Positions 30,663 to 36,581 of a stretch of DNA of 64,000 nt are shown here, piece after piece (positions within the stretch are counted from its first letter, which is position 1; each line of letters begins with the position of its first letter). The stretch is from Podarcis vaucheri (lineage: Eukaryota). The position numbers and the translations under genes are program-made. The stretch is from assembly GCA_965113315.1 (NCBI GenBank), contig OZ220365.1. One strand, given 5' to 3'. The notes under the pieces are model-generated. The model saw only the letters and a program-made list of their open reading frames with translations. It had not been told where the DNA came from and ran no database searches.

Positions 30663-30726
30663 ATGATAAATCAGATCATTAACATTACTCAGTAAAATAA
30701 AAATCTCATTTTTTTCAGAATGCCGC

Positions 30727-31179
30727 TGTCAGGGGATGATTAGCTGCTTGTGCTTAAAATTGTGCCCCCTCAGAGTTTGTGCGGCTCCACAAACCTCTGT
30801 GTGTGACAGAGCTCCTCAGACATGTCTGCTCTAGTCACTAGTAGAGTCTGACAGTGGCTGCCTGCGGAAGCGCTTCCAGCAAAGAAGTTCCTTAACGGAA
30901 ACGCGTCTCCTGGACTCACGACGTGGCAGCTTCCGGCGAAGCATGGGTCTCCCTGCAGTTGCTTCTGACACCTCCCCGCTATTTTCGCTGGAAGTGTCTC
31001 TCACCCCTTTCTCTCCCCTGCTGTTTCCTGCCTGGGCTGCTGCGTCTCTCTCAGCATTACTGAGATCCTCCTCCAGAGACCCCTCGCTCCCCCTCCTTGT
31101 CCCTGCTTTAGCTGCTGACTCTCTCCCAGTCTCTGGGAGCCCTACCACCTCCCTTTCCTCTGATGTCAGTTCCCTGACA
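30727..31179 (-). repeat. 3' LTR
   Basis: Matches 35834-36286 except G30872 vs A35979. Preceded on the minus strand by the PPT. Confidence 0.97.
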
Positions 31180-34100
31180 TCCACCTCCCCTCCAGGGCCC
31201 CCTTCTCCCCCGCCCCTACTCTCTCCTCTGGGCGGTGAGGAGCTGAAACCCCGAAAAGAATCCTCTTCATCTTCAGACGTCTCGAACATTTCCCTCCATC
31301 GGTCTTCGTTCCGACTCGCTGAATCCTCCTCCACCTCGGAATCAGAGAACCCCTCCAACTCTTCTTCTTCGTCGGTGGTGGCGAAGTATTCCCTCCGGAA
31401 CCTCGCCACTGGCTGGGGTTTTCGAGGGAATCTCTGATGAAAAGTTTCAATCAAAACCTCGTCATCTACATCCTCTGCCCTGACCCAGGTGTTTTCCGAC
31501 TCCGGCTCCCCTTCCCACATTACCAAATACTCTACTTGCTCTCCCTTCCACCTGGAATCGAGAATCTCCGCTACATGGTAGCTGTGTTCTTTTTCCTCCA
31601 TAGCTGGTCCCCTATTGACCCTCCCCTCTCTGTCCCCTATATACGGTGACAGCAACGACCTGTGGAACACTGGGTGCAACTTCATGTGGTTCGGTAACCG
31701 GAGTCTGAAAGCCACTGGGTTGACCTGTTGCGTGACTTCAAATGGGCCCAGTCTTTTGGGTCTTAACTTCTTACAACCTCCTTTAAATGGTAACCCTTGG
31801 GTGGACAGCCACACCTGGTCCCCCACCCTAATGCTTTCCCCTTCCCTTCTGGTTTTGTCTGCCTGCCTCTTATATTCCTCCTTCGCCCTGTTTAAATTAA
31901 GTTGGAGCTGGCGATGGATCGCTTCCATTTCTTCAACGAACTGTTCTGCGGCTGGAACGCTCCAGTTCTCCCCTTCCCCCCCTGGGAAGGCTCGGGGATG
32001 ACACCCGTGATTAGCCAAAAAAGGGCTCATCCCCGTGGACACGTTCTCTGCATTGTTGTAGGCAAATTCTGCCAACGCCAGCTTCTCCACCCAATCATTC
32101 TCTCTGTCATTCACATAACACCTCAAATATTGCTGGAGGACACCATTAGCTCTTTCCGCCTGCCCGTTGGTTTCTGGATGACGGGCAGTAGAGAAATTCA
32201 CCTCTACATGCAATAAGCTCATGAGCTTCCTCCAGAACCTGGAAGTAAATTGTTTCCCTCGGTCAGAAACCACCCTCAAGGGGGCGCCATGCAGCCTAAA
32301 CACATTTTCCACAAACAATTTAGCGGTTTCTTCCGCTGTGACCGCATGTGAGCAGGCTATAAAGTGGGCCATCTTGGTTAACAGGTCTACCACAACCATG
32401 ATGGCTGTTTTCCCTTTGGACCTGGGCAGATCAGTCATGAAATCTATTGCCACTGCCTCCCATGGCCTTTCCGGCGTGGGTAGTGGTTCTAATAAACCTG
32501 CCGGTGCCCGCCTCTCCCCCTTGGCTCGTTGGCATCGGTCACACCCTCTCACATATTCCCGCACATCTTCCCTGACCTTGGGCCACCAGAATTCCCTGGT
32601 AACCAGCCACATGGTTTTGTGTTGCCCAAAATGCCCTGCTGTGGGGCTATCGTGCAGTTGCTTGAGTACCTTTTCCCTCAATTCCCCTTCAGGTATGTAT
32701 AACGCTCCCTTGTAGTACAACGCCCCATCTCTCTCCTCAAAACCCCCGGGTTTGTCTCCCTCCCTCCTGAGACCCCTGAGTTTGTCCTGGGCGTATTCAT
32801 CCTGCACCGTTCCCTCTACCAGTTCCCTTTGCCCCACCAATGCCGCCCCACACACCCAGCGGTCCTCGGGAATGACATGGGTCTCTTCGGGTGCACCCTC
32901 TCCCTCCAAATATTCAGGTTTGCGTGAGAGAGCGTCCGCCCTAACGTTCTCCGGGCCTGGTACGTAACAAATCTCAAAGTTAAATTTGGAGAACTCCTGG
33001 GCCCATCTCAACTGCCGTTGGTTGAGCACTCGCGCAGTTCTCCAATACTCTAGATTCTTATGGTCCGTGCACACTTGCACCTTCTGTTGTGCACCAATTA
33101 GCAGGTGCCTCCATCTCCGGAAGGCCTCATGAATCGCAAGAAGTTCCCGGTCGTACACCGTGTAGTTCCTCTCAGATTTGTTCAGCTTTCGCGAAAAGAA
33201 GGCACACGGTCGCCACTCTGACCCCTCCTTCCCCGGCTGCAGAAGAAGCACCGCCCCTATGGCTCTGTCAGAAGCGTCTGTTTCGACCCTCAGCTTTTTT
33301 TGTAAATCCACATGTAGAAGTTGTTCATCAGAGGCGAAGGCCCTTTTCAGTTCCTCAAACACTCGCTCCGCCTCCCCCGTCCAAACAAACTTCTTTTTAC
33401 TGCTGAGACAGTCCGTGATGGGCGCCGTCAGGTGGGTGAAGTTTCGGATAAACTTACGATAAAAGTTTCCAAACCCTAGGAACCTCTGCACATCCTTCTT
33501 GGTCTTGGGTGTTTTCCATTCCAGCACCGCTTGAACTTTGCCGGGGTCCATGGCCAACCCCTTGTCTGACAAGCGGTACCCCAGGAATTCCACCTCCTTG
33601 GTATGAAACTGACACTTCTCCAGTTTCACCCACAGTCTGTTGGCTTGCAGCCTGCTCAACACTTCTCTGACGTCTCTCACATGTTGCTCCTCATTCTCCG
33701 AATACACCAACACGTCATCTAAGAAGGCCACGCAATTCTTGTAGAGCAAAGGCCCCAGTACGTGGTTCATGAAGGCTTGAAAACACGCGGAGCCTGTTTG
33801 TAATCCAAAAGGCATAACGAGGTATTCAAATGCCCCCAAAGGGGTGAACATGGTGGTCTTCCATTCATCCCCTTTCCTTATACGTATCAGGTTGTACGCC
33901 CCCCTTAGGTCCAGCTTTGTAAAAATCTTTCCTTTTCGCACCCTGGTCAAAATATCATCAATCCTGGGCATAGGAAAAGCCGCCGGCTCTGTCACTGCAT
34001 TTAGGCGCCGAAAGTCACATACCAGCCTCGGCTTGTCCGTGTTTTTTTTATCCACAAAAAACACTGGGCTACCCCCCGCTGCCTTGGACTCTCTGATGAA

Positions 34101-34835
34101 GCCTCTCTTCAGGTTCTTGTCAATGAACGCTCGCAACTCCTGCATTTCCCTGTCTGACATGGCATACAACTTGCCTACAGGAAGCTGTGCTCCAGGGAGT
34201 AAATTGATCTGGCAATCAAAGGGCCTATGCGGGGGTAGTTGGTCAGCTTCCTTCTCGCTGAACACGTCGCTGAGATCAGCATACTGTGGTGGCACCTTCC
34301 CCTTCCCCATTACTTCAGTCCCTGCTAGGGTGGCTTGGGCCCCTGCTGACCCCTTTTCCCCCCTGCAGTGTTCTAAGCAATGTGCTGAACCGAAGGAAAC
34401 CACTCTTTGATGCCAGCCCACCAGCGGATCATGTAAGGCTAGCCAGCTCATTCCCAAAATAATGGGAGCGCCTCCCAAGGTGGCCACATTAAACGCTATC
34501 AGTTCTGTGTGCCTTGCCACCCTCATTATCATTGGGACGGTCTGCAAGCTAACTCCTCCTCCCAACAGTTCCCTGCCATCGATCGTGGTCACCTGCAGGG
34601 GGTTGCTTAAAGGGATAGTCTGTATCTGATGTTCAGCAGCAAACTCCTTGCTCATAAAATTGCAGGAGCTGCCTGAGTCCAACAGCGCCTTTATTTTTAG
34701 GGGGTGTCCATTTTGCAGCTCTAGCGACACTTCAATCACTAGAGCAGGTCGAGGAGCTTCTGGCACGGGCACTTTCACTGCTCTTTGGCCTGGCTGCAGT
34801 GCCCTGACGTTGGCAACCAGGCGTTGGCTTTTACC
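30831..34835 (-). CDS. pol: Pol (protease, RT, RNase H, integrase, chromodomain, acidic/basic tail), expressed as Gag-Pol by -1 frameshift
   Basis: Motifs: LLDSGS (PR); KLDLRGAY, MPFGL and FLDD (RT); TDAS, RELLAI and TDHKNL (RH); HDSPTAGH..CDRC, AIDF, SDRG, QAER and LGPF (IN); YHVAEILD..YLVMWEG..NTW (chromo). The frame is open from about 34862 and the start given is the inferred slip site. Confidence 0.96.
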   Translation of the reverse strand, partial: GKSQRLVANVRALQPGQRAVKVPVPEAPRPALVIEVSLELQNGHPLKIKALLDSGSSCNFMSKEFAAEHQIQTIPLSNPLQVTTIDGRELLGGGVSLQTVPMIMRVARHTELIAFNVATLGGAPIILGMSWLALHDPLVGWHQRVVSFGSAHCLEHCRGEKGSAGAQATLAGTEVMGKGKVPPQYADLSDVFSEKEADQLPPHRPFDCQINLLPGAQLPVGKLYAMSDREMQELRAFIDKNLKRGFIRESKAAGGSPVFFVDKKNTDKPRLVCDFRRLNAVTEPAAFPMPRIDDILTRVRKGKIFTKLDLRGAYNLIRIRKGDEWKTTMFTPLGAFEYLVMPFGLQTGSACFQAFMNHVLGPLLYKNCVAFLDDVLVYSENEEQHVRDVREVLSRLQANRLWVKLEKCQFHTKEVEFLGYRLSDKGLAMDPGKVQAVLEWKTPKTKKDVQRFLGFGNFYRKFIRNFTHLTAPITDCLSSKKKFVWTGEAERVFEELKRAFASDEQLLHVDLQKKLRVETDASDRAIGAVLLLQPGKEGSEWRPCAFFSRKLNKSERNYTVYDRELLAIHEAFRRWRHLLIGAQQKVQVCTDHKNLEYWRTARVLNQRQLRWAQEFSKFNFEICYVPGPENVRADALSRKPEYLEGEGAPEETHVIPEDRWVCGAALVGQRELVEGTVQDEYAQDKLRGLRREGDKPGGFEERDGALYYKGALYIPEGELREKVLKQLHDSPTAGHFGQHKTMWLVTREFWWPKVREDVREYVRGCDRCQRAKGERRAPAGLLEPLPTPERPWEAVAIDFMTDLPRSKGKTAIMVVVDLLTKMAHFIACSHAVTAEETAKLFVENVFRLHGAPLRVVSDRGKQFTSRFWRKLMSLLHVEVNFSTARHPETNGQAERANGVLQQYLRCYVNDRENDWVEKLALAEFAYNNAENVSTGMSPFLANHGCHPRAFPGGEGENWSVPAAEQFVEEMEAIHRQLQLNLNRAKEEYKRQADKTRREGESIRVGDQVWLSTQGLPFKGGCKKLRPKRLGPFEVTQQVNPVAFRLRLPNHMKLHPVFHRSLLSPYIGDREGRVNRGPAMEEKEHSYHVAEILDSRWKGEQVEYLVMWEGEPESENTWVRAEDVDDEVLIETFHQRFPRKPQPVARFRREYFATTDEEEELEGFSDSEVEEDSASRNEDRWREMFETSEDEEDSFRGFSSSPPRGESRGGGEGGPGGEVDVRELTSEEREVVGLPETGRESAAKAGTRRGSEGSLEEDLSNAERDAAAQAGNSRGEKGVRDTSSENSGEVSEATAGRPMLRRKLPRRESRRRVSVKELLCWKRFRRQPLSDSTSD
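31180..31216 (-). other. Polypurine tract
   Basis: Minus strand GGGGCGGGGGAGAAGGGGGCCCTGGAGGGGAGGTGGA lies immediately before the 3' LTR TG. Confidence 0.85.
34767..34835 (-). promoter_or_regulatory. -1 ribosomal frameshift signal (slippery heptamer plus H-type pseudoknot)
   Basis: G_GUA_AAA in the gag frame, 6-nt spacer, stem 1 GCCUGGUUGC/GCAGCCAGGC, stem 2 GGGCACU/AGUGCCC. pol is in the -1 frame. Confidence 0.82.
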
Positions 34836-35788
34836 TGCTCCGTTTCTCCCTGCTCTCCCCCCTCAACTGCTCCCACCATCCCTTGCCATTCCTTCCTCTG
34901 GGGGCAGACTCTGGCAAAGTGGCCTGGCTGTTGGCAGAGATAGCATTTCCGGGCTCCCTTTCCCTCCTTCTTCGCCCCCTCACTGGGCTTTGAAACTGCG
35001 CGCGCGCGGGCTGTTCCGATTTCCATCGGCTCTGCCGGCGGGAAAGCTGGCTCAGGAATGTCTGGAATGCGTAACTCCTTCCAACGTTCCCCTCTCCCTT
35101 CCCGCCTCTCCAAGGCTCTTGCCTCCTGGCGCGCTCCAATGGTCAGCGCAGATTTGGTCAGCTGATCCATAGACACCGCCCTGGGGCTCCTGGCCAGCTC
35201 GTCTTTCACAGCTGAAGAAAGACCTTCTTCAAATAGCATCTGAATGGGTGCTGCCGATAAATCCCACCCCAATCTGTGAATCAGCATCGTAAATTCAGTC
35301 CAGTACTCACGGACAGATCTGCTTCCCTGCTTGCAAGCCATTAGCTGTCTGCGCACCACCCCTTCCTCAATATCACTGGAAAACATGATATCCATTGCAC
35401 GAAAGAATTTCATAGTGTCCTTTAGGATATCGTTGTGCGTTGCCATCAGGGGTCGAACCCAGTCCCGCGCCCCCTTCTCAAGATGCCCAATTACGAAAGC
35501 AACTCGCGATTCCTCATCAGGGAACTCATCAAACTGCACATTCAGGGCATATTGCATCTCAGTCCTAAAGGCATGGTAATCCTTGGGGTCCCCCCCAAAC
35601 TTCTGCACCAATCCTGGTACCTTTCTGGGGAACTGAGTGGTTCTCCCCTTTTTGTCAGCATCCTGAGCCCTTCTCTCCTCGAGCCTCGCCGTCTGCAGCG
35701 CAAGTTGGACCTCCAGAGCTTGATACCTTTCTTCCAAGCTTGGACCAGCTCCAACCCCTGCCTCTCCGGTTCCGGCTGGGTTGCTCAT
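34775..35788 (-). CDS. gag: Gag (capsid plus CCHC zinc knuckle), 337 aa from the first ATG
   Basis: KFGGDP..F, VAFVIGHL..GARDW and KQGSRSVREY (retrotransposon CA), EPMEIG, and CYLCQQPGHFARVC. Layout is PEG10/sushi-like. Confidence 0.95.
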   Translation of the reverse strand: MSNPAGTGEAGVGAGPSLEERYQALEVQLALQTARLEERRAQDADKKGRTTQFPRKVPGLVQKFGGDPKDYHAFRTEMQYALNVQFDEFPDEESRVAFVIGHLEKGARDWVRPLMATHNDILKDTMKFFRAMDIMFSSDIEEGVVRRQLMACKQGSRSVREYWTEFTMLIHRLGWDLSAAPIQMLFEEGLSSAVKDELARSPRAVSMDQLTKSALTIGARQEARALERREGRGERWKELRIPDIPEPAFPPAEPMEIGTARARAVSKPSEGAKKEGKGARKCYLCQQPGHFARVCPQRKEWQGMVGAVEGGEQGETEQVKANAWLPTSGHCSQAKEQ

Positions 35789-35820
35789 GATGCTTTCTCC
35801 TGCACAGGCAGCGTACAAAG

Positions 35821-35831
35821 ACTGTCAGACT
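35821..35831 (-). promoter_or_regulatory. Primer-binding site, self-priming type
   Basis: AGTCTGACAGT starts 2 nt after the 5' LTR, has no TGG, and is perfectly complementary to ACTGTCAGACT within the LTR (35952-35962). Confidence 0.8.
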
Positions 35832-35833
35832 GC

Positions 35834-36286
35834 TGTCAGGGGATGATTAGCTGCTTGTGCTTAAAATTGTGCCCCCTCAGAGTTTGTGCGGCTCCACAAA
35901 CCTCTGTGTGTGACAGAGCTCCTCAGACATGTCTGCTCTAGTCACTAGTAGAGTCTGACAGTGGCTGCCTGCGGAAGCACTTCCAGCAAAGAAGTTCCTT
36001 AACGGAAACGCGTCTCCTGGACTCACGACGTGGCAGCTTCCGGCGAAGCATGGGTCTCCCTGCAGTTGCTTCTGACACCTCCCCGCTATTTTCGCTGGAA
36101 GTGTCTCTCACCCCTTTCTCTCCCCTGCTGTTTCCTGCCTGGGCTGCTGCGTCTCTCTCAGCATTACTGAGATCCTCCTCCAGAGACCCCTCGCTCCCCC
36201 TCCTTGTCCCTGCTTTAGCTGCTGACTCTCTCCCAGTCTCTGGGAGCCCTACCACCTCCCTTTCCTCTGATGTCAGTTCCCTGACA
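35834..36286 (-). repeat. 5' LTR
   Basis: 453 bp, TG...CA, upstream of gag. Confidence 0.97.
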
Positions 36287-36581
36287 GCCTCTGTTGAGCA
36301 GGATGAGCACACAGAAACCTTCCCCAGACCTCTCACTTGCACTGTGTTTTGGAAAAAGTAATAAAAAGAAAATATCAGGCTGCTTGGAAGATACTCCCAC
36401 TGTTTCTTACATTCTCCAAACTACAGAACAAATGGTAAGAGATCCCTGTTTCCAAAGCTCTCCCATGCAAAGCGATTCATAGGAGAGGGCAGCATTTGCA
36501 GAATCCTGCCTACTGTATAGTATACCTAACATAATAGTTTATCCAGCCCTGTAGGGAAAAATACGATTACCATATATCATG

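Follow-up and report, generated by a model that had tools for sequence, protein, structure and literature searches.

The 64,000-nucleotide stretch of Podarcis vaucheri DNA analyzed here (assembly GCA_965113315.1, contig OZ220365.1; referred to as the window) contains on its minus strand, at 30725..36286, a near-intact Ty3/Gypsy chromovirus of 5562 bp with the order long terminal repeat (LTR)–gag–pol–LTR. In a preliminary description two similar short units had been pointed out directly behind the chromodomain of Pol and had been taken for possible mimics of the host peptides that bind the integrase-binding domain (IBD) of LEDGF/p75 and related TFIIS N-terminal domains (TNDs). The translation places both units exactly at the positions given there. 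Judged from the comparison with related elements the motif is real and selected. We consider it most likely, with a probability of about 55%, that the units are docking peptides by which the integrase would be tethered to LEDGF/p75 (PSIP1) and/or HRP2 (HDGFL2).

Motif 1, FRREYF-ATTDEEEE-LEGF, comprises the Pol residues 1127-1144 (window 31347-31400) and is situated 10 residues past the end of the chromodomain as delimited by Pfam. Motif 2, WREMF-ETSEDEEDS-FRGF, comprises the residues 1161-1178 (window 31245-31298), 44 residues past that end. The chromodomain and the parts of the two units are the following:

31431..31580, minus strand: chromodomain, residues 1067-1116 (Pfam PF00385, E = 1.5e-11; AlphaFold2 confidence above 90).
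31383..31409, minus strand: helical part of motif 1, VARFRREYF, residues 1124-1132, with an AlphaFold2 helix at residues 1124-1131 (residues 78-85 of the modelled 153-residue piece).
31359..31382, minus strand: acidic linker of motif 1, ATTDEEEE, residues 1133-1140, with two S/T-x-x-D/E (CK2-type) sites.
31347..31358, minus strand: LEGF of motif 1, residues 1141-1144; FVGF, FEGF, FKGF, FIGF or MEGF in relatives.
31299..31346, minus strand: variable acidic spacer, residues 1145-1160, of differing length and poor conservation among relatives.
31284..31298, minus strand: helical part of motif 2, WREMF, residues 1161-1165, with conserved W and F (i, i+4) and a short AlphaFold2 helix (residues 116-118 of the piece).
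31257..31283, minus strand: acidic linker of motif 2, ETSEDEEDS, residues 1166-1174, with two CK2-type sites; 9 residues in all relatives.
31245..31256, minus strand: FRGF of motif 2, residues 1175-1178; together with the EEDS ahead of it, it fits D/ExExFxGF save for a D in place of E at the third position.

The TND-interacting motif (TIM) has been defined as an obligate alpha-helix with a conserved F, V, L or I, a flexible linker, acidic and 8-16 residues long, in which D, E, S and T abound and which is phosphorylated by CK2, and an optional FxGF; several proteins have two or three TIMs, and as a class TIMs bind several TNDs via the helix and the acidic linker alone (PMC9987994). The FxGF is present in every known TND partner of LEDGF and HRP2 and is essential to their binding (PMC9987994). 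For the IBD the consensus D/ExExFxGF has been reported (PMC8022399), and in Drosophila a conserved DFxGFDE is part of the minimal JIL-1 region needed for binding JASPer at its LEDGF domain (bioRxiv 10.1101/624023). The architecture of an IBD-binding motif (IBM) or TIM, which the preliminary description had assigned to the two units, agrees with the definitions in PMC9987994 and PMC8022399. With 8 residues in motif 1 and 9 in motif 2 the linkers are within the defined range, and 8 or 9 residues were also counted in all 21 instances found in relatives (proteins denoted by P numbers in the following). Each linker of this element contains two S/T-x-x-D/E sites and at least one such site is present in 20 of the 21 instances of the relatives, as judged from the sequence consensus alone. 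The FxGF preceded by acidic residues, which the TNDs of LEDGF and HRP2 require, is also present; exact matches to D/ExExFxGF occur in P0121 (EEEDFVGF), P0189 (EEEEFIGF), P0126 (DGEEFEGF) and also in P0122.

Other short linear motifs were considered by eye and rejected. As a motif with two phenylalanines in an acidic tract (FFAT), EYFATTD does not qualify, since its position 4 is not acidic and the sequence is not kept in this form; the pattern [WFY]xx[LIV] of an LC3-interacting region (LIR) is not present; and the sequences do not fit a SUMO-interacting motif (SIM), a motif binding the extra-terminal (ET) domain of BET proteins or the PCNA-binding motifs APIM and PIP.

The 83-residue tail following the chromodomain was permuted 200,000 times and the shuffles were scored for an F, 8-9 residues with at least six D, E, S or T, and then [FLM]xGF. 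At least one copy of this full architecture was obtained in 0.13% of the shuffles and two copies in 0 of the 200,000, while [FLM]xGF alone occurred at least once in 7.9%. A phmmer search with the same tail against all PDB chain sequences (E up to 10) returned zero matches, that is, the cellular carriers of such motifs show no detectable homology to it and the IBM peptides of solved LEDGF complexes were not retrieved by sequence, and a search of the ESM Atlas with the tail gave nothing usable.

The structure of a 153-residue piece comprising the chromodomain and the tail was predicted with AlphaFold2 (AF2) from a 13-sequence alignment. The predicted local distance difference test score (pLDDT) was above 90 in the chromodomain and about 50 in the tail, which corresponds to predicted disorder, and Pfam found no domain beyond residue 1116. 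The helix predicted in motif 1 lies immediately ahead of F1132, and in motif 2 a three-residue helical turn is predicted at residues 1162-1164. On the helix side the terminal F is invariant, and the residue class is retained at i-4 (W/F) and at i-1 (V/M/Y/Q/I). According to this model the units would have both the short helix showing a conserved F, V, L or I and the disordered context that are expected of a TIM.

Homologues were sought in a collection of 5.8 billion proteins and among 1.84 billion representatives, and 397 proteins were compared. The complete unit, consisting of the helix F, an acidic Ser/Thr linker of 8-9 residues and [F/L/M]xGF, was found in no fewer than 12 further Pol tails. 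The subfamily of this element includes P0001-3 as well as P0285 from Podarcis lilfordi. The distant carriers P0121, P0122, P0286 and P0287 follow the scheme RFWEEQF-[AG]TTD..-F[VE]GF plus.W…F-…-FRGF, with motif 1 reading FEEF in P0287, a decayed copy. P0289 has FKGF plus FLGF, P0189 has FIGF, P0126 has FEGF with the second unit cut off, and P0140 has a distal FLGF and a degenerate proximal unit. Over the chromodomain and tail, the identity to this element is 37-57% in the distant carriers; the carrier lineages as a whole are at about 40-90% identity. A homologue search with the 153-residue piece gave P0285 as the sole match.

The helix F, the G and the terminal F are retained among the carriers, and the F ending the helix of motif 1 is invariant in all 12 lineages having this motif. 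Motif 1 always starts 5 residues past the KPxP at the chromodomain end and has a linker of 8-9 residues. The start of motif 2, the linker of which always has 9 residues, is found 38-51 residues past KPxP, and therefore the length of the spacer separating the units is not constant. In the carrier alignment the spacer sequence is poorly conserved. The preliminary description had proposed to examine in relatives whether FxGF and the upstream F are kept against a variable background, and this is what was found: the anchor residues and the linker length are kept and the spacer is not.

In a sister subclade (P0005/6/7/9/227/293/295) the same place is occupied by EYFDDWLF-TPTLSAST-F[QR]GF, the linker of which is rich in Ser and Thr and not acidic. 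None of the outgroup chromovirus tails among the 397 proteins has the motif. Outside the tails of the carrier clade an acidic linker followed by [FLM]xGF was encountered in these proteins almost only within structured reverse transcriptase and RNase H, for example in the 'EFLGF' strand of the reverse transcriptase.

Two further features of related tails were observed. In P0005, P0006, P0007, P0009, P0227 and P0293 a second segment rich in Trp (..WWDD.PE..W.R.W..) and also an acidic stretch, '..GED.GFE..', are located beyond F[QR]GF, neither of which fits FxGF. P0296 and P0299 from Anolis carolinensis, a sister lineage with an intact chromodomain cage, have an acidic tail '...VVTDEEENLGFPPF...' ending in LGF. 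The Anolis sequence '...TDEEENLGF', possibly a motif that is related or just arising, was left out of the motif count, having N at the first F position and a shorter linker.

A look-up in sequencing runs detected the element stretch, as a whole or in parts, in runs of seven organisms. Contigs of four of these were mapped on 31150-31650 at a likeness of at least 80%, and the following counts refer to the 40 listed of 48 variant sites. The 36 motif codons show five synonymous changes, among them those at F1132 and F1178 (TTC to TTT), which are near-fixed in three organisms. M1164L and R1176Q are the only replacements within the motifs, and both concern non-anchor residues. In the spacer and the tail behind the motifs 12 replacements were counted versus 6 synonymous changes. 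Together with the retention of the anchors across lineages this codon pattern indicates that the motifs are deeply conserved and under purifying selection at the protein level.

A tree was built from the region running from the integrase through the chromodomain, which ends just ahead of motif 1 (quick search, midpoint rooted). All rows bearing FxGF form one clade (SH-aLRT support 100, stem 0.86), with chromoviruses of Anolis and another one of Podarcis as its sisters, all without the motif. This topology points to a single origin of the FxGF motifs within one clade.

The residues Y, W and E of the chromodomain of this element align to Y24, W45 and Y48 of HP1 (1KNA), which we take, following the established numbering, to be the aromatic cage. 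The three aromatic residues are intact in 16 of 16 outgroup chromoviruses. In the two-motif clade the third is lost (E or A) in all 12 members scored and the first (N, H or S) in 10 of these, the cage of the other members reading N/H/S-W-E/A. In the FQGF subclade none of the three is left in six of seven members, the exception being P0005 with F at the third position. With Y-W-E the present element does not belong to group I (Y-W-Y), the H3K9me readers. Chromodomains without the first and the third aromatic residue constitute group II, which at the time of its description had been found only in plants (PMC3605345). By its cage residues, the chromodomain of the FxGF clade appears to represent a state like that of plant group II in a vertebrate clade.

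In the mechanism that we favor the motifs would mimic host peptides and dock onto the TND/IBD of PSIP1 and/or HDGFL2. The helix Phe would insert into the host TND at its first hydrophobic pocket, the acidic and possibly phosphorylated linker would run along the basic patch of this domain and FxGF would occupy the second pocket. Phosphorylation of the linker by CK2 could serve as an affinity switch, and two motifs per integrase, multiplied in the multimeric intasome, would provide avidity. The PWWP domain of LEDGF and HRP2 reads H3K36me2/3, and therefore docking would hold the intasome at the bodies of transcribed genes. What we infer concerns the partner, the phosphorylation and any effect on the choice of integration sites. 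A wider evolutionary scenario is tentative, and we rate its chances slightly below even: the lizard chromovirus clade would have dropped the route to heterochromatin via chromodomain and H3K9me and would have gained, once, TIM/IBM mimics that hijack LEDGF/HRP2, arriving convergently at the lentiviral strategy with a CK2-regulated integration into H3K36me3 gene bodies.

Several observations weigh against this mechanism or the scenario built on it. Motif 1 reads EEEELEGF and has an L for the F at position 5 of D/ExExFxGF, motif 2 reads EEDSFRGF with a D for a consensus E, and in motif 1 of P0003 the first FxGF position is M. Acidic-aromatic peptides can bind other partners. The ratio of synonymous to replacement changes, 5:2 in the motifs versus 6:12 in the rest of the tail, points the expected way but does not by itself reach significance (Fisher p = 0.18). 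The gain of the motif and the loss of the cage coincide on a single branch and therefore represent one event and no statistical correlation. The named hosts of the motif carriers are all Podarcis. A Pfam search on the ten longest open frames flanking the element gave zero matches; the intron location named in the preliminary description is putative. The host-mimicry reading of the preliminary description is upheld with regard to architecture, conservation and the predicted disorder and helices, and it is weakened in that motif 1 of this copy has L and not F at the first position of FxGF.

We considered other reasons why the two units could be present in the tail. First, they could be real, selected docking peptides for a different partner, namely another TND (IWS1, TFIIS, Elongin A, PPP1R10, MED26) or a reader of acidic-aromatic peptides of another kind. 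Their role might then lie in transcription or elongation of the element, in nuclear import or in protection from silencing, and not in target choice via LEDGF/HRP2. Conservation indicates a function and not a partner, and the TIM helix and the acidic linker alone suffice for several TNDs (PMC9987994). The L or M at the first F in motif 1 of the youngest subfamily and the Ser/Thr-rich, nonacidic linker of the FQGF subclade also speak for a different partner. However, FxGF is found in every lineage and is described as the LEDGF/HRP2-specific part of TIMs (PMC9987994), and the sequences were not fitted by FFAT, LIR, SIM, the BET-ET-binding motif or APIM when compared by eye. We regard a different partner as rather unlikely.

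Second, the tail could act inside the integrase as a DNA-mimicking or autoinhibitory segment that folds onto the basic C-terminal region of the integrase or onto the cage-defective chromodomain and regulates the assembly of the intasome. The tail is strongly acidic and lies beside the basic RFRR ahead of motif 1 and the basic LTR-encoded C-terminus of Pol; moreover, the chromodomain has lost its methyl-lysine cage and therefore its groove could serve another ligand. In the AF2 model, however, the tail, with its pLDDT of about 50, shows no confident packing on the chromodomain, and a mechanism based on charge needs neither the invariant G and F of xGF nor a linker fixed at 8-9 residues. Such an intramolecular role is improbable.

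Third, the units could be chance features without function in an acidic tail of low complexity. Tails of this acidic type are common, and shuffling yielded [FLM]xGF by itself in 7.9% of cases, but never two full units; furthermore, the architecture has persisted in lineages that are about 40-90% identical and have a variable spacer, the anchor codons vary synonymously and the motif does not occur in the outgroup tails. Because of the motif conservation, chance is effectively refuted and has only a very small probability. Finally, it is least probable of all that what is conserved is not a peptide but a nucleic-acid element acting in cis close to the polypurine tract: the motif region is indeed located 65-220 nt upstream of the 3' LTR, next to a stretch (GGEGGPG.EVDV) whose conservation in relatives is due to its overlap with the polypurine tract and the end of the LTR, but the synonymous third-position changes in the anchor codons and the unremarkable RNA fold of the motif region (z-score -1.12, not significant) argue against a cause at the DNA or RNA level, and the relatives keep the residue class (acidic, Ser/Thr, aromatic) and not the exact sequence.

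The element carrying the docking-peptide candidates has the features of a chromovirus, namely protease, reverse transcriptase, RNase H and integrase, a chromodomain at the integrase's C-terminal end, and flanking LTRs. The parts beyond the chromodomain and the two units are:

30725..36286, minus strand: whole LTR retrotransposon, recognized by its direct repeats and open gag and pol reading frames.
35832..36286, minus strand: 5' LTR, from direct-repeat comparison.
34778..35818, minus strand: Gag reading frame, Retrotrans_gag/Ty3 capsid-like with a CCHC zinc knuckle (Pfam).
30834..34778, minus strand: Pol reading frame of 1315 residues with protease, reverse transcriptase, RNase H, integrase (H2C2, core, SH3), chromodomain and tail, from translation of 30831-34778 and Pfam.
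31641..32684, minus strand: integrase with zinc-binding domain (residues 699-753), catalytic core (771-868) and Tf2-type SH3 (986-1046), Pfam PF17921, PF00665 and PF24626.
31180..31244, minus strand: Ser/Pro-rich and then Gly-rich stretch, its 3' part being a purine-rich run (polypurine tract) adjoining the 3' LTR.
30725..31179, minus strand: 3' LTR, which also codes for the final part of Pol, a basic C-terminus with LLCWKRF (direct repeat and translation).

The two LTRs (30725-31179 and 35832-36286) are 455 bp each and differ by a single mismatch at 30872, and therefore the copy is young. In summary, a lizard genome of the Podarcis type harbors here a chromovirus that is young and apparently intact. 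The Pol frame stays open across the polypurine tract and about 116 codons of the 3' LTR (window 30834-31179, minus strand). The sole LTR difference (30872 / 35979, G vs A) is located in the part of the LTR that is read as Pol, and the LTR-encoded open frame is one residue apart between both LTRs (tblastn 99.1%). Basic Pol ends similar to LLCWKRF were also seen in P0001, P0002, P0121 and P0140, a likeness that is confounded by constraint on the LTR at the DNA level. The 5-bp flanks of the TG...CA LTR ends (30722-30726, 36287-36291) read GCCGC and GCCTC, so that only four of five positions of the target-site duplication agree, although the LTRs are nearly identical.

The database proteins closest to Pol are entries from Podarcis muralis named 'Gypsy retrotransposon integrase-like' with 92, 73 and 69% identity. 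P0004, a Podarcis muralis protein named 'vomeronasal type-2 receptor 26-like' at NCBI, contains integrase and SH3 sequence with 80% identity to the element. Its gene model is either a chimeric prediction or reflects an insertion in or beside a gene. The look-up in sequencing runs found no RNA run on record with the element stretch.

The units can be compared with the cellular IBM/TIM of JPO2/CDCA7L, IWS1, POGZ, KMT2A/MLL1, MED1 and CDC7-ASK and of Drosophila JIL-1 with JASPer. They share the disordered context, the helix Phe, the acidic Ser/Thr linker and the FxGF after acidic residues. More than one copy per protein is also found there, two in JPO2 and three in IWS1 (PMC9987994, bioRxiv 10.1101/624023, PMC8022399). 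The differences are that the units described here reside on a retrotransposon integrase behind a chromodomain, that one of them has L for the first F in this copy and that their binding to a TND is a proposed one. In the full-text literature we found no description of LEDGF/TND-type FxGF motifs in a retrotransposon, in agreement with the preliminary description, whose author was not aware of such a report for a vertebrate Gypsy element.

If the mechanism holds, lentiviral integrases would share with this element the partner domain in LEDGF/p75 and the tethering to transcribed genes marked by H3K36me3. The preliminary description had also held that lentiviral integrases contact LEDGF by a different surface, and this is in accordance with the structurally prearranged, folded site reported for them as opposed to the unstructured IBM of the cellular partners (PMC10854676). 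Whereas the lentiviral integrase uses a folded surface of its catalytic core, a dimer of which binds the IBD in HIV-1, this element would rely on a peptide that is disordered and resembles those of the host, and hence the likeness would be convergent.

The contact of the murine leukemia virus (MLV) integrase with BET lies in its C-terminal tail. The binding of MLV integrase to BET ET, of the Ty5 hexapeptide to Sir4 and of Ty1 TD1 to AC40 resembles the proposed interaction in that a short disordered peptide at the integrase C-terminus is employed; motif and partner differ, and the interaction has been proven experimentally there and is proposed here. Tethering by short C-terminal integrase peptides has been reviewed for Ty5-Sir4, where it depends on phosphorylation, and Ty1-AC40, and the MLV-BET interaction is named as well (PMC7459421). 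With the targeting by chromoviral chromodomains (group I, YWY and H3K9me; plant group II, CR motifs) the present case has in common the element family, the position at the integrase C-terminus and the loss of the first and third aromatic residue. Compared with the plant group II chromodomains, this vertebrate clade has the same residues missing (N/H/S-W-E/A, with Y-W-E in the present element) and in addition bears an FxGF tail, which is without counterpart in the 16 cage-intact outgroups. Both the tethering by peptide motifs in integrase tails and the use of LEDGF by retroelements are already known, and the finding is a variant of both.

The choice of the integration site determines the harm done by a retroelement as well as its persistence. 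To our knowledge only few tethering mechanisms are known, namely those via LEDGF in lentiviruses, BET in gammaretroviruses, Sir4, AC40, TFIIIB and Sap1 in yeasts and H3K9me in chromoviruses; we know of no retrotransposon integrase for which a cellular LEDGF/HRP2 docking motif has been proposed before, so that the present one, if the mechanism is true, would be the first. It would then represent a convergence with HIV through molecular mimicry. It would also be a natural case in which targeting via a chromodomain was exchanged for targeting via a peptide motif, for which the cage-intact sister families in the same genome offer a built-in comparison. The TND-TIM module would be extended to mobile elements, and the elements of the FxGF clade would be predicted to accumulate in active genes of lacertids.

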